64,000 nt of DNA from Glycera tridactyla (lineage: Eukaryota): the NCBI GenBank assembly GCA_965644265.1, contig OZ286461.1, forward strand, positions 36,456,001 to 36,520,000, written 5' to 3'. Of this stretch, positions 2,807 through 64,000 are shown in pieces. How positions within the stretch are numbered: position 1 is the first letter of the stretch; each line of letters opens with the position of its first letter. The notes beneath the pieces were generated by a model that saw nothing but the letters and a program-made list of their open reading frames with translations, did not search any database and was not told the DNA's origin. The position numbers and the translations under genes were made by a program.

Positions 2807-5800
2807 ATGCCGTCTGGAAATCCGTCCAAGACTAAAAGACAGCGCGACCAGCAACATGAAGATGTCAAGAATGCAGAGGATGCACGTACAGTAGGCGATA
2901 GCATAATCGGGCACATGTGGAACCAAGTAAAACAGAAGACTCTGCCGGCAACGGGCGATAATGGAGGAAATGTCCCGGGCAAAGATTCAAACCTCGCAGC
3001 CCTGCCTAAGCCGAGCCAACCAGGTCAGTTACCCCAACCTTCTCATGCTATTCAGCCTGCTAGTCAGCAAGAGAACCTAGTTAGTGAGCCGTCACCGCCA
3101 CGGAGCTGTGACGGTGACAACAAACAGTACCGGCTCTCGTTAGTCAACCACCCGTTGACGCCTCCCCCACCGCCACCGCCGCCGCCAGTGAAGAGCACCA
3201 GCACGGCCGCTCGCGGTGGGTACCCTGACTCGCCTCTAACACCTCTGTCGCGTAAATCTAACCAAATCATCTCTCATGCCATACATGAAACAGTGAACCA
3301 AACCTTCCAATCGTCCCAAGATAACGACCATACTAACCTGACCGAAAATGCTGCAGGTGATCGGACGAAAGACCCTGTCCGAAATCTACTTAGTGAGCTC
3401 GAGCGAGCCTCACCAAAAGGCGCAGACTCAAGGGCCCGCGTTGCCACCACGGCCACCAACGAGACCGCCACTGCCGCCGCCATTGCCGCCGCCAACAAAA
3501 CCATCACTGCCACCGCCGACAAAACCTCAGTCCCTATCACCGCTACCACAGCCCCTGCTACTGCCAAGCTATTAACACCAATGGCCACGGCCAGTCAAGG
3601 CAGCATAATGCTAACGGGAGACATAGCTTTCCAAGTTGACAGCATAATCACAGATCCACAATTAGGCACTCAAGCAACAATAAAGAAAGGAAAAAAACGA
3701 GGCGTCTCTGTATCACCAGACGACCTCGGGCAGGTAGAAAAACCTAGTAGCAGACGTAAGAAGAAACAAAGACAGAGGAGTGACAGTCATAACCCGGGCA
3801 ATAGCTGTGGCAGTAACTCAGACAGCAACTCTGATGATGATGATGATAATGACACTGACATGGAAGAAGACCACCTAGAAGACCAAATGGAAGTGGTGGG
3901 ATCCCAAACAGGCAAGGCACCTGATAACAGAGAGCCATTCAGAGGAATACCAAACAATCTCAACCAACCCTTCGACAGACTCCTGAACGGGATGCCTGAG
4001 AATACGACAACAAGCCCACCTGGACAGCAGCATGTCCCAATCTCACTTGCACAGACTAAATCTGACATACTCGCTGAGCTAAAAACGAACATTGAACTTG
4101 ATATGAAAATGAAACTAGAAGTGGAACTAACCGAAAAAATACGCAAAAAGATAATGCAAGACATCAGCAGCGAATTCCTGAATCTGACAAATCAACTGAG
4201 GAAACTCAACAGAGAAGTGAGCGAAAACTCTCGGACTATAGTCATGCTGAAAAGCAACCTGGAAAAAATATCCGGCAACGGAGCTGCGACAACAAGTGCG
4301 CCCCAGACAGGACCCATACAAGAGGACCTCGGAGCCACCTCCAGTATCCTGAATCGAGTTGAAAATCTAGAACTCTCTGATCGCCTGACCACGGTCATCA
4401 TCGATGGAATTGACGTAAACCACAACATCTCGCTGATAGATAACGTGGGCTACGAGTTACAGGAAGCTTTGGATGTTAATCTGTCACCATCAGATTTCGT
4501 GAAATGTTCCCTGATTGGTAAACGTGACGAAAAGGGACGACGATCCATACTCACAAAACTGAAAGATGCAGAGCTGAAGCGTCACCTCATGAAATGCAAA
4601 GGTCAACTGAGGGGGACCGATATCTACATCAAGGAGTTCCTAACCACCAAGAACAATAAGGTCTATTACGAGGCCTGCCAGGCGAAAAAGAACAAACTCC
4701 TCGACCGAGTCTGGACACATGATGGGCTTGTATGGGCCCAAGAGCAGCCTGACTCCAAACCAGGCGTGCTTTCCGACCCAAGCATTCTCCGATCTATTAA
4801 TGAGGAGCTAGGACGGGGAAAAGGGGGCAGACTAAGCGTATTCGACCATCAACATAAGAGAGATGACGAAGTTCCCCATGAAAGACTGGACGAAGTGGGT
4901 GAGGCACGTAAGAACCCAGACCAAATTCAGCCTGACAACATCAATAGGCGGCAGCAGGGATACCGCCAAGGCAACCGCCATGACCACACCCACTACCACA
5001 AAAATAACAGGAGTAGCGACCTCAGAAATGACCGCCAGAGTCACAATGATAGTCGCGAACACCCACCCAGCAACAATGACTATGGGAGCCACGTAAGCAG
5101 GAGGGATAAAAGTTACAACGATGGTCGTGATCGCCGAAGGCGTGATAATAGTAAGGAGTACCAGCACTCCAACAATCCCCCCAATCAATCAATCAATCAA
5201 TTAGTACAGAGAGGTGGCAGATCAGAATCTCCTAGACGGGGCAGAGACAGAGACTGCGAAAAGCAGTTAGGATATCAGAGCAACTACACTAGTAACGAAC
5301 GTGATAGACGTGATGAGTATCAACGCAGACGACACCGTGACGGAAACTTCTCAGGCCGACAGGCCCACTCGGGAAATCGAGCGCAGAACCAGAGAGGGGC
5401 CGCATTGCCTGAGCAAAGCGTCATGAGCAACCACTCCCGCGGCAACAACAACAACAGGCAATCCTCGTATAGACAGCGCTGCATGAACGCATGGAGGATC
5501 CAAGGAACGAGCGGTGCATGGAAAAATAAAGCTACCATCAAGACAACGAGTGGCTGGACCTATCGCACAATAACTACAATTAATATAATCATGAGCCTAC
5601 AACCCATGTACAAGAGGAGCGTGACTAGGATCTACCCACCGAAAAGGATCATAACCACAGAGGACAGAGTTATACGTGATGAAAGGATTGCCAAATTCAA
5701 ATCAGGCTATCTGGATGCGGCTCGGATCACCGTGAGTAAATTCGGACTCCCCAAAGTCCGGTTAGTGGGTGCCTCCCATGCAACAAAACTAATGAACTAC

Positions 5801-6526
5801 ATCACAGATATGGATGACGACAACATCCTGTCTGGTTTCGTGAACGCCGAGTCAGTGAAATCACTTGCAGTCGGGGGGACCAAATTCTGGACATTTCGCG
5901 ATGATGTCCGAGGCAGGGAAATGTCAGTAACGAAAATGATGCGTTACGGAAACCAGTGGGACTCCCCAGAAATGAAAAAGCTCAGACCTGACATAATATT
6001 GCTACTACTCGGATCCAACGATGCTGATGATGCTAACTCGCACCAAGAACAAATCAGGAAAAACAATACGAAGTACAACTATGCGTGGAAGGGGCCCATA
6101 GAGGCGGAGATTTGGCGAGACCAACTTTACCAGGAACTAGACGAGACCATGACATTCCTGAGATCACGTTACCCGAATGCCCCATGTGGCATAATACCCA
6201 TATTCCCGAGAAAATGGTGGTGTAGTGGAGCACGAAAACTTGCGTGGTCACTAAATAAGCACCTATACCAAGATCTCTGGAAGTCACACCATACACGCCT
6301 ACTCATAACAAGGTCACTCTATTATGAGGAAATACCACCCACTGGAGACAACGACAACATAGTCAGTAGCTTTCTGAGAATAGACAATCTCCACTTAAAT
6401 GATAATGGACACTGGATACTGCTACACGACCTCCTGCCAACCATTATGGACTGGTGGAAAAACAAACAAATGCCAGAACACCCAGAGAGCGGGACAGATA
6501 GTCGCAAAAGAAGAAATCAGCGATGA
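2807..6526 (+). CDS. LINE ORF1-like protein, 1239 aa: disordered N-terminus, coiled coil, L1/Tnp22-type RRM+CTD, R/D/N/H-rich linker, SGNH (GDSL-like) esterase
   Basis: Uninterrupted 3.7-kb frame with first ATG at 2807 (AAAAATGC). Heptad-rich segment ILAELKTNIELDMKMKLEVELTEKIRKK...LEKIS; RRM/CTD-type signature VIIDGI...GRRSILTKL...LRGTDIYIKEFLT...VWTHDG; SGNH blocks VGASH, AVGGT, LLGSND and DNLHLNDNG; basic NLS-like runs RRKKKQRQR and RKRRNQR. Confidence 0.85.
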   Translation: MPSGNPSKTKRQRDQQHEDVKNAEDARTVGDSIIGHMWNQVKQKTLPATGDNGGNVPGKDSNLAALPKPSQPGQLPQPSHAIQPASQQENLVSEPSPPRSCDGDNKQYRLSLVNHPLTPPPPPPPPPVKSTSTAARGGYPDSPLTPLSRKSNQIISHAIHETVNQTFQSSQDNDHTNLTENAAGDRTKDPVRNLLSELERASPKGADSRARVATTATNETATAAAIAAANKTITATADKTSVPITATTAPATAKLLTPMATASQGSIMLTGDIAFQVDSIITDPQLGTQATIKKGKKRGVSVSPDDLGQVEKPSSRRKKKQRQRSDSHNPGNSCGSNSDSNSDDDDDNDTDMEEDHLEDQMEVVGSQTGKAPDNREPFRGIPNNLNQPFDRLLNGMPENTTTSPPGQQHVPISLAQTKSDILAELKTNIELDMKMKLEVELTEKIRKKIMQDISSEFLNLTNQLRKLNREVSENSRTIVMLKSNLEKISGNGAATTSAPQTGPIQEDLGATSSILNRVENLELSDRLTTVIIDGIDVNHNISLIDNVGYELQEALDVNLSPSDFVKCSLIGKRDEKGRRSILTKLKDAELKRHLMKCKGQLRGTDIYIKEFLTTKNNKVYYEACQAKKNKLLDRVWTHDGLVWAQEQPDSKPGVLSDPSILRSINEELGRGKGGRLSVFDHQHKRDDEVPHERLDEVGEARKNPDQIQPDNINRRQQGYRQGNRHDHTHYHKNNRSSDLRNDRQSHNDSREHPPSNNDYGSHVSRRDKSYNDGRDRRRRDNSKEYQHSNNPPNQSINQLVQRGGRSESPRRGRDRDCEKQLGYQSNYTSNERDRRDEYQRRRHRDGNFSGRQAHSGNRAQNQRGAALPEQSVMSNHSRGNNNNRQSSYRQRCMNAWRIQGTSGAWKNKATIKTTSGWTYRTITTINIIMSLQPMYKRSVTRIYPPKRIITTEDRVIRDERIAKFKSGYLDAARITVSKFGLPKVRLVGASHATKLMNYITDMDDDNILSGFVNAESVKSLAVGGTKFWTFRDDVRGREMSVTKMMRYGNQWDSPEMKKLRPDIILLLLGSNDADDANSHQEQIRKNNTKYNYAWKGPIEAEIWRDQLYQELDETMTFLRSRYPNAPCGIIPIFPRKWWCSGARKLAWSLNKHLYQDLWKSHHTRLLITRSLYYEEIPPTGDNDNIVSSFLRIDNLHLNDNGHWILLHDLLPTIMDWWKNKQMPEHPESGTDSRKRRNQR

Positions 6527-6618
6527 TATGAGAGGAGGCTCAAACAACGGCAACACGAAAGAGACGCGACGGTTCGTGCACACCACAACCAAGACTGAGA
6601 CGACGTCGGACATAGTCT

Positions 6619-7486
6619 GCCACAAGTGAAACCAATATAGCGACACCTGGCGGCGACCATAGTCATTAGCGTCTTAATAGTCATCCTGGACCACACCTGG
6701 AGGCACACCTTCAAGCCTGCCACCTAATGAAGCCACCAAACGACTTAATCGCTTGGTAGGTGCTCAAACTGAAACAACGTCGGGCATAGTCTGCTACAGG
6801 GGAAACCTTGATAGTGACACCTGGCGGCGACTAGAGTCAGTAGAGTCCTCATAGTCAACTGAGGAACCGTTACAATAGGAAAGTACGCCAAGGGTGGAAC
6901 CTTCTGGGCTACACCTGGAGGCACACCTGCCACCTGACAACAACAGCATTCGGTAGAGTCTTAACACTGCATCAAACCATGGCCACCACAGGTGAATCCT
7001 TATGGGTGACATCTGGCGGCGGCTAGGAAAGCACCTACCAAACAGCCAGTAGTTTTACCAACTGGTGACCGAGGATGAAACGCGTCAGCCTGCCACAGGT
7101 GAAATCTCATGGACGACACCTGGCGGCGACCAGACGCCACCTGCTACAAGGCATCTCACCGGGAAAACGAGGACCCGTCCAGTAATTACTGTAAATTTGC
7201 CAAAAGTGAAACCTTCTGGGGGACACCTTGTGGCGACTAGACAGTAATCTACCAATGGGCCGTACAGCCCACCATCGACTTAGTATTCAAGCATGCCCAG
7301 ATTGAACTGTACCGAACATCGATTTCTTACAGTCATCAAATATGGACCCGGACCCTGGACTCTGACACACACACGCACGCATAGATATGCAAAGACCACA
7401 CCCCCAACAACATCGAGCAGACAGACACATACACAACGGCAGAAATGTACGCATGAACACAGATGCACAGGCAAGCATGGACACGG

Positions 7487-7530
<44 letters not shown>

Positions 7531-7960
7531 CCGACACACAATCAAGTGTGATGAGAGAAGAATCACAACAACATAAACACACCACCAACACCACCAAACG
7601 GACACACACAGAAACAATGGCCCAGATGCACACACGATTACAGACACACACGCACGCACGAACACACCCACACACACACACATACATATAGGAGAAGAAC
7701 AAAAACACATCGACACGCGCACAAACACATGTCAGTTCTACCAAGTCACGCGCACGCACGCGCACACATGTGCATATACGCTATCGAGCACCACAGACAC
7801 CCGAATGTCAATTCTCCAGTAGTGACTGTAAATCTGCCAAAAGTGAAACCTTCTGGGGACACCTTGTGGCGTCTAGACAGTAATCTACTAATGGGTCGTT
7901 CAGCTCCCCATCGACTAGTATTCGATCACAAGTGATACCTCCTGGGTGATACCTGGTGGT
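6619..7960 (+). repeat. Dispersed array of eight ~39-bp bipartite motifs, consensus GCCACARGTG-N13-GACACCTGGCGGCGAC
   Basis: Copies at 6619, 6793, 6887, 6985, 7092, 7199, 7836 and 7925, all in one orientation. The internal spacer is 13 nt (12 in one copy) while most of the intervening sequence differs. An extra half site CACACCTGGAGGC lies at 6692. Confidence 0.9.
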
Positions 7961-8669
7961 TCCACATCGAGCAACTGCAGCGATGACTACGCCAGCTACA
8001 ATAACATTGCCTCACCACAATCAGTACAACTGAATGCCTAGTGACTCAGCCTACCGTTCAAGCCGCCAGGATCAGGCAGCGCCATGACAACCAGGGGCAT
8101 CCAACCAGAAGAATCATGGCCCCACACCTGCCCAGGCCATGGCCGGCTAATTGAATGGGACCATAGCATGCTCAGACTGAAATGTACCGAACAACGATTT
8201 CTTACATGGACCCGGACCATGGACTCTGACACTCACACGCACGCACAGAAATACAAAGACCACACCCCCAACAACATCAAGCAGACAGACACATACACAA
8301 TGGCAGAAATGTACGCATGAACACAGATGCACAGGCAAGCATGGACACAGTCACACACACACAGACACACACACCCACACACAGCCGACATACGATCAAC
8401 TACGATGAGAGAAGAACTACAACAACATAACCATACCACCAACACCACCAAACAAACACACACAGAAACAATGGCCCAGATGCATACACGATTACAGACA
8501 CAGATGGGTGCATGAACACACCCACACACACACACACATATAGGAAAAGAACAGAATCACATCGACACGCACACAAACACATGTCAGTTCTACCCAGTCA
8601 CGCGCATGCGCGCACACACATGCGCATATGCACTATCGAGCACCACAGACATCCGAATGTCAATTCTCC
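7186..8669. repeat. Nested diverged duplications X-Y-X'-Z-Y'
   Basis: X 7186-7279 matches X' ~7823-7923. The CA-rich block Y 7280-7818 matches Y' 8165-8669; both start GCATGC(C/T)CAG and end CCGAATGTCAATTCTCCA, with scattered substitutions and indels. Confidence 0.9.
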
Positions 8670-8817
8670 ATTTGTCGTGACAGGTATCCATGTGTCCTTA
8701 CATTTTCAATAACTTGGTGCATCAATATTATGCATGAGAAGCAGATCACAGCAGTCCAAGTCCCGTTTTTCGAGGCCGGGCGAGCAATTTGATACAATCA
8801 CATGACCTGATTCTGAC

Positions 8818-8984
8818 CTGAAGTGATTGATCCGATCTATGTCTGAACCACGTATTCTAACTCTAATTTTACACCAAGGTTGAACTGATCTCTGATTGAA
8901 CTGAAGTGATTGATCCGACCTATGTCTGAATCACGCATTCTAACTCTAATTTTTACACCTAGGTTAAACTGATCTCTGATTGAA
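8818..8984. repeat. 83-bp tandem duplication (2 copies)
   Basis: CTGAAGTGATTGATCCGA...GATCTCTGATTGAA at 8818-8900 and 8901-8984. Confidence 0.95.
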
Positions 8985-9386
8985 TTGAGCCAGGTATAGA
9001 TCCTCGACTTTGATCCAAGTTCTAGAAATCTAGAATCCCCGAATCAAATCTCAATCACTCGAACCACTTGAATTGACGGGCGTGATCGAACCTCCGTACT
9101 CTTCATTTGTGGTGTTCTTGATCCCAACACAGGATCAGACCGAAACCTCGGATCACTTGGCTCTGTATTTACGAATTTGGAACTGTGAACTCGAGATTGA
9201 AACTCCTTGGAGTTCTTGGAATTTTTTTTGTAAATTTTGAAGTTGAAAATTGAATCACGAATTTTAAATCTTGAATTCTTGGAATTCCGGAAACTGGATC
9301 AAGTACTCCCGTGCTGGTAGTTTCACACGAAGGCCAGTTCTTCCATGTATGTATAGTGTGTACGGTGTAGCAATCACTCACGCTCC

Positions 9387-9458
9387 TCTTATCCCACCTC
9401 CTATCCCACCTCTTATCCCACCTCCTATCCCACCTCTTATCCAATCTCCTATACCATC
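9387..9458. repeat. 12-bp minisatellite x6 with alternating TCTT/TCCT variants
   Basis: TCTTATCCCACC and TCCTATCCCACC alternate; the last two copies are degenerate. Confidence 0.9.
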
Positions 9459-9575
9459 TTATAGCCCATCCTTTTGCCATCTCACCTCGTACCATGTACC
9501 AATCGATCAAACAAATAGCATTCCCCCTTCTGCCGATTAGAGCAACTGAAGCCATAATATTGCCTGGTTGCATGA

Positions 9576-9806
9576 ATGAGTCTACTCTGTTCCGCTGTTC
9601 CACTGCAAACATTACAGGAAGCAACAGACAGTGACGCACTGACTGACAGAATGGACACAATCAAGTATAATTTATCCACACACACCACATACACGCCACA
9701 CACACACAAGATCTCCACACGTGAACCCGTCTACCCGCCGCGTCAACCATCCTCCAGAGAAGTCGATCGAGTCAGACCCATATCTGAAATTGACCCATTC
9801 GTATGA
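9576..9806 (+). CDS. Putative 76-aa upstream ORF whose stop overlaps the ORF2 start (ATGA)
   Basis: TGA at 9804-9806 overlaps ATG at 9803-9805. No recognisable domain; whether it is translated is unknown. Confidence 0.3.
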   Translation: MSLLCSAVPLQTLQEATDSDALTDRMDTIKYNLSTHTTYTPHTHKISTREPVYPPRQPSSREVDRVRPISEIDPFV

Positions 9807-12232
9807 ACAGACGTAGAAATACACATATATTCCCCTCCGAACATGCGCTTACCGATTTTGAGTATACTACCGCCTCTCTCTCGAACCTACCCGGAATCAG
9901 CTTCGCTGGTCTAAATATACAGAGCGTCACACGGAAAATGGATGACATTGGTCTATTAATTGCGAAGAGTGGAGTTGACTTCCTGGCACTAACCGAGACA
10001 TTCCTGAATGAAAGTATCAGTGACGATGAGCTCCACATTCCTGGCTATAATTTCATCAGGTCAGACCGCACAGCCACGAGTGGAAAGCTCGGAGGTGGTG
10101 GATGTTTAATTTACTTTGGGTCACAGTACGCGGTGACAGAAGTAACTGAAATTCGTACATGTGATCAAAATATTGAATGCGTCTGGTGTCTTCTCCACTT
10201 AAAGAATTGTAGACCTCTTGTTATATGCACAGTCTACCGCCCGCCAGACGGCAATGTTGATGATGCTCTAGCACGCCTTAGCTCTTGTATAAACAACCTA
10301 AATGAAACCCAGCCACGCCACGATATGATAATCCTGGGGGACTTAAACATTGATATGGCATCCAGTAACAATCGTAAAACCAGGAAATACAACTCCTTTC
10401 TCAGACATACCGCTCTCACTCAACTCATAAAAACCCCAACCAGAATAACTACCAACAGCGCAACAATAATCGACCACATACTAGTCTCTAATCCTATCTA
10501 CTATGGTCGGTACGGAGTTGTTGAACCGGCCCTGAGCGACCACGCACTAATTTTTGTATGTAGAAAGCGTCAAAAACTTCCAACCACCAAGGAGGAGATA
10601 AGCTTTCGCAGCTACAGGAAATTTGATGCGAACTTATTTAAAGCCGATTTGAACAATATCAACCTTGAAGATATCCTATCAATTTCTGAAGTAAATTCTG
10701 CCTGTGATCAACTTGAGAAGAAAATCACTGCATGTATGAACAGACATGCCCCGGTAAAGTCACGCAAATTCAGAAAAAACAATCTGCCGTGGGTCGATAA
10801 CAACTTCCTGAGCATGGTTGATCTTTGCGAACATCGCTCGAAAATTTTCGGCAAACGACCTACCGAGTTGAACCTGGAAATGAAAAAGGAGGCAATCAGA
10901 CAGAAAAACTCCCTGAAAAGGGATCTGATCAGAGATTATGTCGCTACGAACGTGGAAAGACATTCCAACAATCCAAAAAAGCTATGGCGAGCACTGAAGG
11001 AAATCTGGCCGCTAAAGAAACCCAAAAATACGACCCCTCTTTTGAAATCTGTAAGTGACATCAAAAAGGCAAACGAGATCAATAATTATTTCTGCAAGAT
11101 TGGGGAAAATCTAGCCAGTCAGATTCCACCGGCTGGGAACCCGTGTGGCCCATCTGTCTATTTACCGCCAGTATTCGAATTAATACCAACTACTCCAAGT
11201 GTGATAGCAAAAATAATAAGCGGAATGAAAAACACACAGTCAGCGGGTACAGACGGGATCAACAGCACCTTTCTCAAGCTCTTCCCTGACAACATTATCA
11301 ATGCAGTGACACACATTTGTAATATTTCTATTAGCTCGCACACATTCCCAAGCAACTGGAAAAGGAGCACAGCAACCATAATACACAAGGGAGGCCATGA
11401 CCACAGCTTCAGCAATTTCAGGCCAATCTCAATACTCCCAGTATTAGGAAAAGTGATGGAGAAGGTCGCACACAGCCAAACACAAGAATACCTCACGAAA
11501 TACAATCTTCTGTCGGATGCCCAATTCGGATTCAGGGAGGGGAGCTCAACTGGGACGTGCCTGGTCGGATTCCTTGATAAAATCTACAGGAATGCTGACC
11601 AGGGGCGCCCCACTGGGGTCCTCTTCCTGGATCTGAAAAAGGCATTTGACACCGTCAATCACTCTAGGCTCTTGGAACGACTACGCGAGATGGGATTCAG
11701 AAACAGCACTGTCCGTTGGTTCGAATCCTACCTCGCAGACCGACGACAGATCTCAAAACACAACAATACCTACTCTGAAGAAAGACCAGTAAGCTGTGGT
11801 GTACCACAAGGGTCCATTTTGGGCCCCTTGTTATTTTCGATTTATGTAAATCAGTTACCGACTATACTCCAACAGTGCTCATCATTTCTATACGCAGACG
11901 ATACGGCCATCTGCTCGAGTGCTGAGAGCGAAGAGTCCCTGCTAGCCAACCTCCAGCATGACCTAGCAATCATCTGTGCTTGGTTTAAATTTATGAAGCT
12001 GTCTTTGAACCTAGACAAATCGTCCCTAATGTTCTTCGGAAATAGGCACCAGACACGAATTATCAATGCACAGTCTCTGTTATACAATTGGAGGGCAATA
12101 CACCGAGTGAGTAAGTACAAATACCTCGGCATTGTCCTTGACAGTAACCTAAATTTTGAAAGCCATGCTAACAACCTAGAATCGTGCACTATTTATATAT
12201 CATTCGCTAATACAGTCGGTTATTTGTTTTAA
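9803..12232 (+). pseudogene. LINE ORF2, APE endonuclease + reverse transcriptase (CR1 group), truncated by a late lesion
   Basis: APE motifs LNIQS, LTETFL, YRPPD, GDLNID, IDHIL and SDH; RT motifs FRPISILP, QFGFR, FLDLKKAFDTVNH, GVPQGSILGPLLF, YADDT and KYLG. The frame drifts into unrelated sequence after SHANNL (~12179) and stops at 12232. Confidence 0.95.
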
Positions 12233-12239
12233 TAATCAC

Positions 12240-12662
12240 ATCTATGCAAGCATGTCAAAGTCTGCCTCGCATAAGCTTCAAATGATGCAGAACCGCTGTC
12301 TGAGAGTCGTGAGAGATTGTCAACCGTCATACTCGGCGACCGAGTGCCACCACTCATTGAAGGTACCATACCTGGAGTCCCTTCGCAATCGCCACTTGCT
12401 CATTGAAACTTACAAGTGGGCGAATCAGATAGGTAATGTACAATTGCGCGACTGCATTAGGAGTAGGTCGGCGATCTCCTCGCGACGCACTCGACAAACT
12501 GTGAAGCGCGATCTGGAAATACCCTTCACCCGCACAAGCTTTGCGCTTGGCAACCCAGTGATACGGGGTATCAATCTTTGGAACTCAACCGAGGCATCTA
12601 TCCGCAACTCAGCCTCACTAGAAACACTGAAACGCCACGCAAAACGTATATACAAATTATGA
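12240..12662 (+). pseudogene. Out-of-frame C-terminal part of the same ORF2
   Basis: IYASMSKSASHKLQMMQNRCLRVV...RGINLWNS...SLETLK matches CR1-group ORF2 C-termini (LQxxQNxAxRxI, WNxL). It is shifted by +1 relative to the 9803 frame. Confidence 0.85.
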
Positions 12663-29088: not shown

Positions 29089-29290
29089 GAAAATTACATC
29101 AAATGAGTACAGGACGCATTCGTGTACGGAAAATTACATCAAATGAGTGCAGGACGCATTCACGTACTGAAAAATTACATCGAATGAGTGCAGGACACAT
29201 TCACGTACTTAAAAATCACATCAAATGAGTGCAGGACGCATTCACGTACGGAAAACTACATCAAATAAGTGCGGGACGCATTCAAGTACC
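29089..29290. repeat. ~40-bp minisatellite x5
   Basis: Unit GAAAATTACATCAAATGAGTGCAGGACGCATTCACGTACG. Confidence 0.95.
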
Positions 29291-34273: not shown

Positions 34274-34668
34274 CAATAGGCAGTAGGTCATGTGGAGCTT
34301 CACAATATCTATGTCTTCAATATTCTCCTCCACAACACATCAATAGGCAGTAGGTCATGTGAAGCTTCACAATATCTATGTCTTCAATACTCTCCTCCAC
34401 AACACATCAATAGGCAGTAGGTAATGTGAAGCTTCACAATATCTATGTCTTCAATACTCTCCTCCACAACACATCAATAGGCAGTAGGTCATGTGAAGCT
34501 TCACAATATCTATGTCTTCAATACTCTCCTCCACAACACATCAATAGGCAGTAGGTCATGTGAAGCTTCACAATATCTATGTCTTCAATATTCTCCTCCA
34601 CAACACATCAATAGGCAGTAGGTCATGTGAAGCTTCACAATATCTATGTCTTCAATACTCTCCTCCAC
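34274..34668. repeat. 67-bp minisatellite, ~5.9 nearly identical copies
   Basis: Unit CAATAGGCAGTAGGTCATGTGAAGCTTCACAATATCTATGTCTTCAATACTCTCCTCCACAACACAT starting at 34274, 34341, 34408, 34475, 34542 and 34609. Confidence 0.97.
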
Positions 34669-51034: not shown

Positions 51035-51668
51035 TAGTCTAATTATCATGTTGAAAAAGAGCATTTCATTTATTCAGATCTTAATCGAACCGAATATTGG
51101 CAGTGACATTTCCAACTGAAACGGGGGAATTGAGGCAATCGGTTAATTGGGTTATCATTGAATACTTCAAAATATATATTCGGTGAGGTACACATATAAA
51201 ACCCATACCAAGCACCTCAAAATCATTCTAGAACTTAGACAAAAGTCCAGGTCAGGCGGGAAGCCGTGCATATAATTCTAGCGCCGACAAAGAACAAAAC
51301 AGAGTTCAGGTTACACCAGGAGCTAACATGGGGTGTGAAAGAGGCGGTGGCACGAATTAAAAAATCAAGCAGATTAATGCAGAAGCACGATCTCCTTTTG
51401 GTGACTAGAGCCGCATTACATGACGGTGAATAAATGAATGCCGACAGGTTTATGTGATGACGCGCGTCTGTATATATGCGTACGTTTGAAATTTCGCGTC
51501 ACGCCGGAGTATAAACAGAGATGGTGGGGGTTTCTGTGGAGTGAACCGTCTATACAGGCATGATACACACAATATGGGGTCAACCTTCCCCCTCTAATAG
51601 GATAATGCAATGTGCAGACTCACAACAATGTTTTCTGGCATGCCGATTTTCCATAAAAAGTGATCATT

Positions 51669-51912
51669 ATCCAAAAATAGTGATGGTGGGCATCATGTAT
51701 TCAAAAATAGTAATGGTGGGCATCATGTATTCGAAAATAGTAATGGTGGGCATCATGTATTCAAAAATAGTAATGGTGGGCATCATGTATCCAAAAATAG
51801 TAATGGTGGGCATCATGTATTCAAAAATAGTAATGGTGGGCATCATGTATTCAAAAATAGTAATGGTGGGCATCATGTATTCAAAAATAGTAATGATGGG
51901 CATCATGTATTC
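51669..51912. repeat. 30-bp minisatellite x8
   Basis: Unit ATTCAAAAATAGTAATGGTGGGCATCATGT; gives spurious IVMVGIMYSK repeat ORFs. Confidence 0.97.
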
Positions 51913-62469: not shown

Positions 62470-63163
62470 TTTAGTGACGATGTGGATTGGCCCCTCAAGA
62501 TTTTGTTTTCAGATAAAGATTTTTCGCTGTTAATGTGTTAACATCTATTTCCTGTCTCGTGAACAAGCCCCGGGGAGCCTGAAGATGTACCCCACATGTG
62601 ATGATGTAATCTTTATTAGGGCTAATAAACATATTACGCAGCCCCAATTCATAGTCTTGAACTCATCTTGGCACCTTACCATAAATTCCTATCTAGCTAA
62701 GCATATCTTAGTATGTTGACAGAGGCATCTGCATCAGAGACCACCTGTATTCAGAGACCACCTGCCCACAAAGGCTACTGTTCACCATCCAAGAACCGTT
62801 CCACCACAGAATATGCAATAAGAGCCCCCCTCCCCTCACCACCACATTTTGGAAATCCCTCTATTCATTGACTTGTTCACATTTTCTGATTGGACAGGTG
62901 CATTTTAAATATACCTGCCCATGGGGGATATGTTCTATGTCTTTGCACTCCAGGAGTGGGTCAAAAGGCAGTTGAATTTTTGCCGTGTATTAATGAAAGG
63001 AAGGGTGGGGAGAGATAGTTGTCAAGCTTCTTGAAGCAGGTAGATTTTCCTGGTGGACAGGTTACTTTCAATTATACCCAGCTGTCTGCCGAGCAGGGTA
63101 ATTCAAAATCCACTCTGATTTAAGTCCTTTATAACTTTTTGAGACATGGGAGATGTTCCTATT

Positions 63164-64000
63164 GGGCAGGTAGATTTCAATTTGACCTGCTAGATTGATA
63201 TAATGAAAATGATTCAAAATGATTTACATATGACAATGCAGGTCGAGTTTTGATGAACAGGGCAGTGCAAGAAAACCTCAAAATATCTACCTGTCCAGTG
63301 GGCAGGTGGATTTTAATTTGACCTGCTTGATTGATATACTGAATCGATTAAATATGATTTACATATGACAGTGCAGGTCGAGATTTGATGAATAGGACAG
63401 GGCAAGAAAACCTCAGAATATCTACCTGTCTATTGGGCAGGTGGATTTTAATTTGACCTGCTTGATTGATATATTGGAATTGATTCGAGATGATTCACAT
63501 ATGACACTGCAGATTAAGATTTGATGAATAGGACAGGGCAAGAGAACCTCAAAATATCTACCTGTCCAGTGGGCAGGTAGATTCTAATTCTACCTGCTTG
63601 ACCGATATATTGAAATTGATTCAAGATGATTTACATATGACAGTGCAGGTCGAGATTTGATGAATAGGACAGGGCAAGAAAACCTCAAAATATCTACCTA
63701 TCTAGTGGGCAGGTAGATTCTAATTCTACCTGCTTGATTGATATATTGAAATTGATTCGAGGTGATTTACATATGACACTGCAGATTAAGATTTGATGAA
63801 TAGGACAGGGCAAGAAAACCTCAAAATATCTACCTGTCCAGTGGGCAGGTAGATTCTAATTCTACCTGCTTGACCGATATATTGAAATTGATTCAAGATG
63901 ATTTACATATGACAGTGCAGGTCGAGATTTGATGAATAGGACAGGGCACGAAAACCTCAAAATATCTACCTGTCCAGTGGGCAGGTAGATTCTAATTCTA
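63164..64000. repeat. 136-bp satellite, over 6 copies, running off the window end
   Basis: GGGCAGG anchors at 63164, 63300, 63435, 63571, 63707, 63843 and 63979. Units carry the palindrome ATCTACCTGTCCA-G-TGGGCAGGTAGAT. Confidence 0.97.

Follow-up and report, generated by a model that had tools for sequence, protein, structure and literature searches.

The described systems closest to the locus reported here are found in other retrotransposons. In stringent long interspersed nuclear elements (LINEs) of the L2 clade, the eel UnaL2 and the zebrafish ZfL2, a stem-loop in the 3′ untranslated region (UTR) is reported to be recognised by the element's own reverse transcriptase (RT; PMC5135761). In SART1, RNA structure affects initiation at the second open reading frame (ORF2), and the review reporting this regards the initiation of ORF2 in most elements without long terminal repeats (non-LTR elements) as an open question, proposes that intergenic regions could hold internal ribosome entry sites (IRESs), and states that the intergenic regions of LINEs reach at most "hundreds of bases" in length (PMC3894237). 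Known cis-acting RNA signals of LINEs are single structures that occupy either the 3′ end or the junction of ORF1 and ORF2, whereas the array that we describe here is repeated and lies in an inter-ORF spacer. It was found in a stretch of 64,000 nucleotides of Glycera tridactyla (hereafter the window; assembly GCA_965644265.1, contig OZ286461.1, positions 36,456,001 to 36,520,000 of the forward strand), in a LINE with eight copies of a bipartite motif between its two genes. Our preferred reading, to which we give a rough probability of 0.55, is that the motifs are RNA hairpins which act in cis, as a selected array, in the full-length sense RNA of the LINE and serve as a multivalent protein-binding platform.

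A first-pass annotation, prepared from the letters of the window, had reported eight bipartite copies in a single orientation within a LINE inter-ORF spacer. Both statements held. A covariance model built from the eight copies recovered just those eight in the window, all on the + strand and at 52-67 bits, with a runner-up match of 9.5 bits, and the array lies between an esterase-bearing ORF1 (2807-6526) and an ORF2 (9803-12232) encoding an apurinic/apyrimidinic endonuclease (APE) and RT. The 39-nt motif spans 6618-7961 and occurs nowhere else in the window, where neither the covariance model nor a blastn self-search returned further copies of the array. When the first-pass pattern was scanned with up to three mismatches, matches were obtained at 6619, 6793, 6985, 7092 and 7199, all on the + strand, against 0.00 expected from 100 shuffles. 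The diverged copies at 6888 and 7926 were added by the repeat finder as family D1. Repeat families D7/D8 and the blastn self-search place the copy at 7836 within a 111-bp segment that duplicates 7178-7288 at 90% identity.

As hairpins, all on the + strand, the eight copies have the following positions and covariance-model scores. Copy 1 (6618-6655), located by pattern, alignment and covariance model (62.7 bits), has a younger duplicate in copy 2 (6792-6829; 59.9 bits), the duplicated unit with flanks being 94 nt long and 82% identical. Copy 3 (6886-6923; 52.1 bits) is diverged, copy 4 (6984-7021; 55.6 bits) has the most stable single fold (z = -3.3), copy 5 (7091-7128; 66.5 bits) is the sole copy with both CAGGTG and CACCTG, and copy 6 (7198-7235; 67.4 bits) carries a compensatory change from C-G to A-U at pair 11-37. 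Copy 7 (7835-7871; 65.5 bits) belongs to the 111-bp duplicate, while the most diverged, copy 8 (7924-7961; 53.6 bits), shows two compensatory changes in its basal stem. The first-pass measurements of spacing were reproduced: the gap between the motif halves is 13 nt in seven of eight copies and 12 nt in copy 7, and the start-to-start distances are 174, 94, 98, 107, 107, 637 and 89 nt, so that all but one fall between 89 and 174. The exceptional 637-nt interval holds, and the array is split by, a 529-bp AC-rich block with CA microsatellites (7290-7818, + strand; repeat finder, blastn self-search), and a second copy of this block, 87.5% identical to the first by blastn self-search, lies further down the spacer (8165-8670, + strand). 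A ninth copy has decayed at 6686-6710 on the + strand: its left arm is lost and its right arm is 92% identical to that of copy 3 (repeat family D10).

As the first-pass annotation had stated, the motif is conserved while its flanks diverge. With the two young duplicate pairs left out, mean pairwise identity among the 39-nt cores, compared as paralogous repeats of one element copy, is 72%; under optimal global alignment the linkers reach 48% (40 nt upstream) and 51% (40 nt downstream), the level of random 40-mers from the same spacer (48 ± 6%). The array is of the repeat-spacer type and not an evenly decayed tandem repeat. A simple decayed minisatellite was rejected on these figures, the divergence being uneven over the unit, and TRF reported no tandem array at the hairpin region. 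A protein-coding origin of the repeats was also discarded, as only one of the seven spacings is divisible by three and Pfam gave no match in the spacer ORF.

Uneven conservation might still arise neutrally, if an old tandem duplication had left cores that merely look conserved through gene conversion or mutational bias. The young duplicate pairs 1/2 and 6/7 agree with such an origin, keeping their cores no better, or only slightly better, than their flanks; one copy has decayed, the single hairpins are weak, and the spacer is full of other duplications. The older copies, however, hold their cores at 72% beside linkers at the random level, and two further lines of evidence given below, covariation and a relative with its own array, tell against neutrality.

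Pairing of the two motif halves as an RNA hairpin, raised as a possibility in the first-pass annotation, was borne out by covariation. The eight copies were aligned over 51 columns, and the fold tested comprised a basal stem (columns 6-9/40-43), a middle stem (11-16/32-37) and an apical stem (20-22/26-28). Standard pairs were found in 89.4% of 104 cells (13 pairs in each of 8 copies), against 30-52% in slid controls in which the 3′ partners were moved by 1-3 columns. Five pairs showed changes on both sides, a number reached by 0 of 500 shuffles, and the covariation score was 0.30, compared with 0.19 ± 0.03 in the shuffles; the covariation result was unchanged when copy 7, a recent duplicate, was left out. 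RNAalifold, run without a given structure, returned the same fold except for pair 13-35. The five compensatory events are independent of one another: two lie in the basal stem of copy 8 (U.G to G.U and G-C to A-U), and the others are a C-G to A-U change in copies 6/7, a C-G to U-A change in copy 5 and a U.G to A-U change in copy 1. Gene conversion would homogenise the cores rather than yield such paired double changes, which, exceeding all 500 shuffles, count against a neutral by-product.

The hairpin so modelled is about 38 nt long. Its basal stem, (U)GCC/GGC(G), is followed by a small purine internal loop, in which an invariant A stands opposite an invariant G and one variable base; above this come a 6-bp middle stem (CAGGUG/CACCUG), a 3x3 internal loop with AAA opposite NGA, a 3-bp apical stem and a 3-nt loop, and a single-stranded UAGR tail often follows the hairpin. 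The unpaired positions A10, G30, A31 and G38 are invariant or nearly so, as expected for a surface contacted by protein. When the whole array (701 nt) was folded, copies 1, 4, 5 and 6 formed as modelled (z = -2.2). A K-turn or loop-E reading of the internal loops was dropped by eye, as the GA positions do not fit. Rfam 15 contained no family matching the hairpins, and the sole match, of chance level, was to mir-297 in a CA repeat (25.6 bits, gathering score 90).

Several observations weigh against the array being a selected set of protein-binding hairpins. About eight independent changes break pairs, and pair 13-35 is A.C in four copies. Taken singly, the hairpins are thermodynamically weak (z from -0.2 to -1.6 in seven of eight), copy 4 being the exception; copy 2 prefers another fold, and the repeat at 6686-6710 has decayed. 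The covariation is also that among eight paralogous repeats of a single family copy. The antisense strand pairs at 80.8% over all 13 pairs, and once two G.U-dominated pairs are dropped the two strands pair about equally. Since the antisense strand pairs about as well, pairing does not decide the strand, and the sense reading rests on the LINE context. Lastly, ORF1 proteins (ORF1p) of the L1 type are generally described as sequence-unspecific RNA binders. On balance, the repeated unit appears to fold as a hairpin with compensatory changes among its copies, a conclusion of moderate strength. The first-pass proposal of a repeated RNA signal thus stands as far as pairing and compensatory changes are concerned, while the protein or process that would read it we infer from context.

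A relative of the element provided a second array. When the C-terminal 810 aa of ORF1 were used in an exhaustive search without profiles, the part with the RNA recognition motif and C-terminal domain (RRM/CTD) and the esterase part gave separate matches. The best esterase match, P0091 (32% identical), lies on a 9.7-kb contig, L004 (GCA_029979705.1), which holds a complete relative with an ORF1 at 384-2510, an esterase ORF at 3061-5415, a spacer of 1.1 kb and an APE-RT ORF2 at 6510-9425. It is the closest relative that could be retrieved, with identities of 40% in ORF2 (790 aa), 39% in the RRM/CTD and 32% in the esterase. Its esterase-ORF2 spacer contains eight copies of a different, 22-nt hairpin, GCC-RA-UUC-(6-nt loop)-GAA-RM-GGC, followed by YUUAGR. 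Here the pairing is stronger than in the window: all 48 of 48 cells are paired (100%), against 40-58% in slid controls, five of six pairs have two-sided changes, a result reached by 0 of 500 shuffles, and RNAalifold agrees. A model of this hairpin found those eight copies alone, confined to the L004 spacer. Two other retrievable copies of the family, L007 and L014, are more than 99.6% identical to L004. As a separate observation, only the first ~300 aa of the 784-aa L004 esterase ORF match an esterase, and no recorded Pfam family covers the remaining ~480 aa.

An eight-hairpin array with perfect pairing, independently kept in the same place, is hard to reconcile with a neutral by-product, and together with the paired double changes it leads us to regard that explanation as improbable. 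Neither of the two hairpin models finds the other array. The hairpins are therefore family-specific, as expected if their binder is encoded by the element. Judged from the two sequences, the window element and L004 share no DNA motif but a common architecture, in which a hairpin array follows the esterase. A GCC/GGC basal stem topped by a purine-rich internal loop occurs in both hairpin types, and a tail of the form "GGC N2-3 UAGR" is present in four of eight copies in the window (copy 1 would be a fifth, with its UAG shifted by 2 nt) and in seven of eight in L004. TAG is enriched in the array region of the window, with 17 occurrences against 8.3 ± 2.2. A grammar of GCC/GGC base and UAGR tail may accordingly be shared by both types, which is suggestive only.

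The two arrays also differ in how they are placed relative to the flanking genes. The array starts ~90 nt after the upstream stop codon in the window and 215 nt after it in L004; from its end to the ORF2 AUG there are 1841 nt in the former and 224 nt in the latter. As the distance from the stop codon is similar and that to the AUG is not, the array tracks the upstream gene more than the downstream gene. This bears on the idea that the hairpins serve translation of ORF2, by internal ribosome entry, shunting or an aid to re-initiation across the 3.3-kb spacer. Some special route to ORF2 does seem to be needed: the spacer contains 58 AUGs, not depleted compared with 64.5 ± 5.3 in shuffles, which makes plain scanning or re-initiation from ORF1 implausible, and intergenic IRESs as well as an effect of RNA structure in SART1 have support in the review literature (PMC3894237). 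The array-AUG distance, however, is not kept while the distance to the upstream stop is similar (90-215 nt), and a possible leader is found elsewhere, since the last 1.1 kb before the ORF2 AUG (8671-9802) is AUG-poor (12 against 23.7 ± 3.3 in shuffles) and lies downstream of the array without overlapping it. This segment might serve ribosomes as a landing zone or form the leader of a transcript specific to ORF2, and the mechanism that supplies ORF2 with ribosomes, or with a transcript of its own, probably operates downstream of the array. To our knowledge, moreover, known IRESs are single complex folds and not arrays of one small hairpin. A role of the hairpins in ORF2 translation is on these grounds unlikely.

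The same motif had been presented in the first-pass annotation as a CTCF-like array and a possible mobile insulator. An array read as DNA could consist of CTCF-like insulator sites, of E-box pairs for ZEB, Snail or bHLH proteins, or of an internal promoter or enhancer for ORF2. The reported 13/14 match of copies 1, 2 and 4 was confirmed against the loosened CTCF consensus CCRSYAGRKGGCRS: with one mismatch allowed, these three copies and one unrelated site matched, four in the window where 0.65 are expected. No copy matches the full core (0 of 8), and the other five have at least two mismatches. All three near-matches read GTC where the CTCF core has GGC, with T in place of the second G, and the missed G of this triplet is among the best-conserved positions of the CTCF motif. 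For these reasons the motif matches do not support a CTCF-site array or the first-pass label of CTCF-like; the L004 array is unrelated in sequence to that of the window and has no such motif. The facing E-boxes (CAGGTG...CACCTG) that had also been described are both intact in copy 5 and not in the other seven; the left box is intact in copies 4 and 5 only and the right one in copies 1, 2, 3 and 5, so a bipartite ZEB/zfh1-type site, with both half-sites kept in one of eight copies, is not supported either. The shorter CACCT does occur in six of eight right arms, and a DNA binder acting as a dimer would be compatible with the inverted-repeat symmetry as well, pairing being blind to strand. Compensatory double changes between the arms, by contrast, would be unexpected for two half-sites of one protein. 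On these motif matches a DNA-binding function, CTCF-like or ZEB-type, is not supported, and we hold any DNA-level protein-binding array to be highly improbable. We infer instead that what is read is RNA, on the sense strand.

On our preferred reading, the eight motifs would be ~38-nt hairpins in the sense transcript, just downstream of the stop codon of the ORF1-esterase frame, and would together give the full-length LINE RNA a multivalent platform for protein binding that is specific to the family. As binder we consider the element's own ORF1p most likely, through its trimer-forming RRM/CTD module: the protein would be released from ribosomes ~90 nt upstream of the array, and the array would then seed assembly of the ribonucleoprotein (RNP) on the element's own RNA. 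ORF1p is preferred because the hairpins appear family-specific, lie just past the ORF1 stop and would meet a type of ORF1p that is multimeric. The same structural evidence would also suit hairpins bound by a host factor that exports the unspliced LINE RNA from the nucleus, stabilises it or localises it, comparable to retroviral transport elements, or hairpins acting as a decoy or target in host defence. Conserved purine-rich internal loops and a single-stranded UAG tail are typical of sites of cellular RRM and similar proteins. A conserved factor should nevertheless hold its site steadier than the hairpin sequences suggest, which differ wholly between the two relatives, although this argument is weak, the two elements being in different hosts. 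A host reader seems to us rather unlikely. The broader form of the ORF1p proposal, that in an invertebrate LINE lineage with an RRM-type ORF1, an esterase, a kilobase spacer and APE-RT, family-specific hairpin arrays act as a packaging or self-recognition signal read by the lineage's own ORF1 protein, is put forward tentatively, as a possibility that we do not favour over its negation.

The element itself is, by its predicted reading frames, a near-intact LINE in which ORF1 combines RRM and esterase, ORF2 combines APE and RT, and 3.3 kb of spacer separate them, all on the + strand. ORF1 (2807-6526; 1239 aa), defined from the ORF list, its translation and Pfam, encodes a coiled-coil, an RRM/CTD-type module and a C-terminal GDSL/SGNH esterase (Pfam Lipase_GDSL_2 at residues 1052-1210). 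Either an RRM/CTD module or an esterase occurs in known ORF1 types of the Jockey superfamily's CR1 and L2 lineages (PMC4120745), and the element is probably CR1/L2-like. The two parts are fused here in one frame of 1239 aa, whereas L004 has them in separate ORFs, and no protein matching both was found in the exhaustive search with the C-terminal 810 aa. Some 400 nt upstream of the ORF1 start, a tRNA-like stretch (2335-2410) carries motifs resembling an A-box and a B-box, TGGCTCAGTGG ... GGTTCAATCCCCGG; neither ARAGORN nor Rfam called it, and it could be a SINE (short interspersed nuclear element) head or part of the LINE 5′ region.

The spacer (6527-9802; 3276 nt), delimited by the ORF coordinates, shares with the ORFs a sense strand rich in A and C. 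Its distal part (8807-8988 and 9385-9456) contains two repeats, one in tandem with a unit of 83 bp (2.1 copies, 91%) and the other of 12/24 bp, CCTCYTATCCCA, in six copies. ORF2, with APE and RT, extends over 9803-12662 by Pfam, by tblastn with P0001/P0002/P0006 and by its 40% identity to the L004 ORF2. Homologues align from its residue 5-9, so the start at 9803 is real. The frame is open to 12232; after a single frameshift near 12180, homology runs on in another frame to ~12650. This frameshift, 3′ of the RT domain, is the sole defect of ORF2 before homology ends; it lies at 12178-12186 of the window and may reflect either a genuine lesion or a fault of the assembly. Since ORF1 stays open throughout its 3.7 kb and ORF2 has a single lesion, the copy is young, and the divergence among the repeats would then have built up in an active lineage, under selection for retrotransposition, rather than by decay after insertion. 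Elsewhere in the window there are four satellite-like arrays, at 34274-34668, 51663-51912, 63163-64000 and 29089-29289, with units of 67, 30, 136 and 41 bp, respectively; the array of 136-bp units extends past the window end.

Other searches defined how far the array reaches among relatives. No further copy of the window element's family was retrieved by window self-search or by word-index protein and metagenome-contig searches; word-index protein searches with ORF1, and with the esterase part alone, gave no matches, and an exact-pattern scan of metagenome contigs gave none for the bipartite motif. The best matches in the ORF2 search were ~40% identical and lay on short contigs. One of these relatives, L001, offers 763 nt upstream of ORF2, with no array there. 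In distant relatives at ~30% ORF2 identity, namely L010, from the bivalve Mactra antiquata, and L011-L013, ORF1 overlaps or abuts ORF2, and these compact elements have neither a spacer nor a hairpin array. L002, L003 and L010-L013 were set aside on account of differing upstream context or compact layouts. Separately, downstream of a stand-alone LINE esterase ORF on the metagenome contig L009, two copies of a 27-nt repeat were noted (1490-1640), the first embedded in a GCGCGGU...ACCGCGC stem; the pair may be a small or decayed hairpin array.

Among known systems, the array resembles the UnaL2/ZfL2 signal, which is likewise a family-specific RNA stem-loop of a CR1/L2-group LINE recognised in cis by a protein of the element, binding being proposed in our case. 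That signal, however, is single, lies at the extreme 3′ end, is kept in 5′-truncated copies and has been borrowed by SINEs, whereas the array has eight copies, lies 5-6 kb from the 3′ end and would be present in full-length RNA only. A 3′ stem-loop of the stringent-LINE type was rejected as an identity for it, as the array (6618-7961) stands upstream of ORF2 (9803-12662) and not at the element's 3′ end. Like the SART1 ORF1/ORF2 junction and the proposed LINE IRESs, it would place RNA structure between the two ORFs of a non-LTR element (PMC3894237); in SART1, unlike the window element, the stop and start codons overlap and one structure stands beside the AUG, while the array is repeated and at least 1.8 kb from the AUG. 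At the DNA level, CTCF-bearing SINE B2 and the tandem promoter monomers of the mouse L1 5′ UTR are also retrotransposon-borne repeat units proposed to bind host DNA-binding proteins. The CTCF core of the former is unmatched in our array, and the latter are ~200-bp units conserved over their full length upstream of ORF1, in contrast to a 39-nt core kept downstream of it.

The first-pass annotation knew of no LINE with such an array, and in full-text searches of the literature we likewise met no account of hairpins repeated as an array between the ORFs of a LINE. Annotators should avoid mistaking these arrays for minisatellites, CTCF sites or CRISPR-like arrays, and kilobase-long LINE "spacers" are, on this example, not junk. 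How ORF2 is translated from a bicistronic LINE RNA is an open question (PMC3894237). Also open is LINE cis-preference, that is, how the proteins pick their own RNA, and covarying family-specific hairpins offer a handle on both questions. The functional parallel may lie with viruses: in MS2-type coat-protein hairpins, the retroviral packaging signal psi, the Rev response element (RRE) and the constitutive transport element (CTE), several small hairpins with conserved unpaired purines provide a multivalent platform for a cognate protein. These are viral and not LINE signals, related to the array by functional analogy only, with no sequence relation and no Rfam match. If our proposal is true, the array would be a sequence-specific counterpart of viral packaging signals in a LINE, would give cis-preference a physical basis, and would imply co-evolution of hairpin and protein between families.

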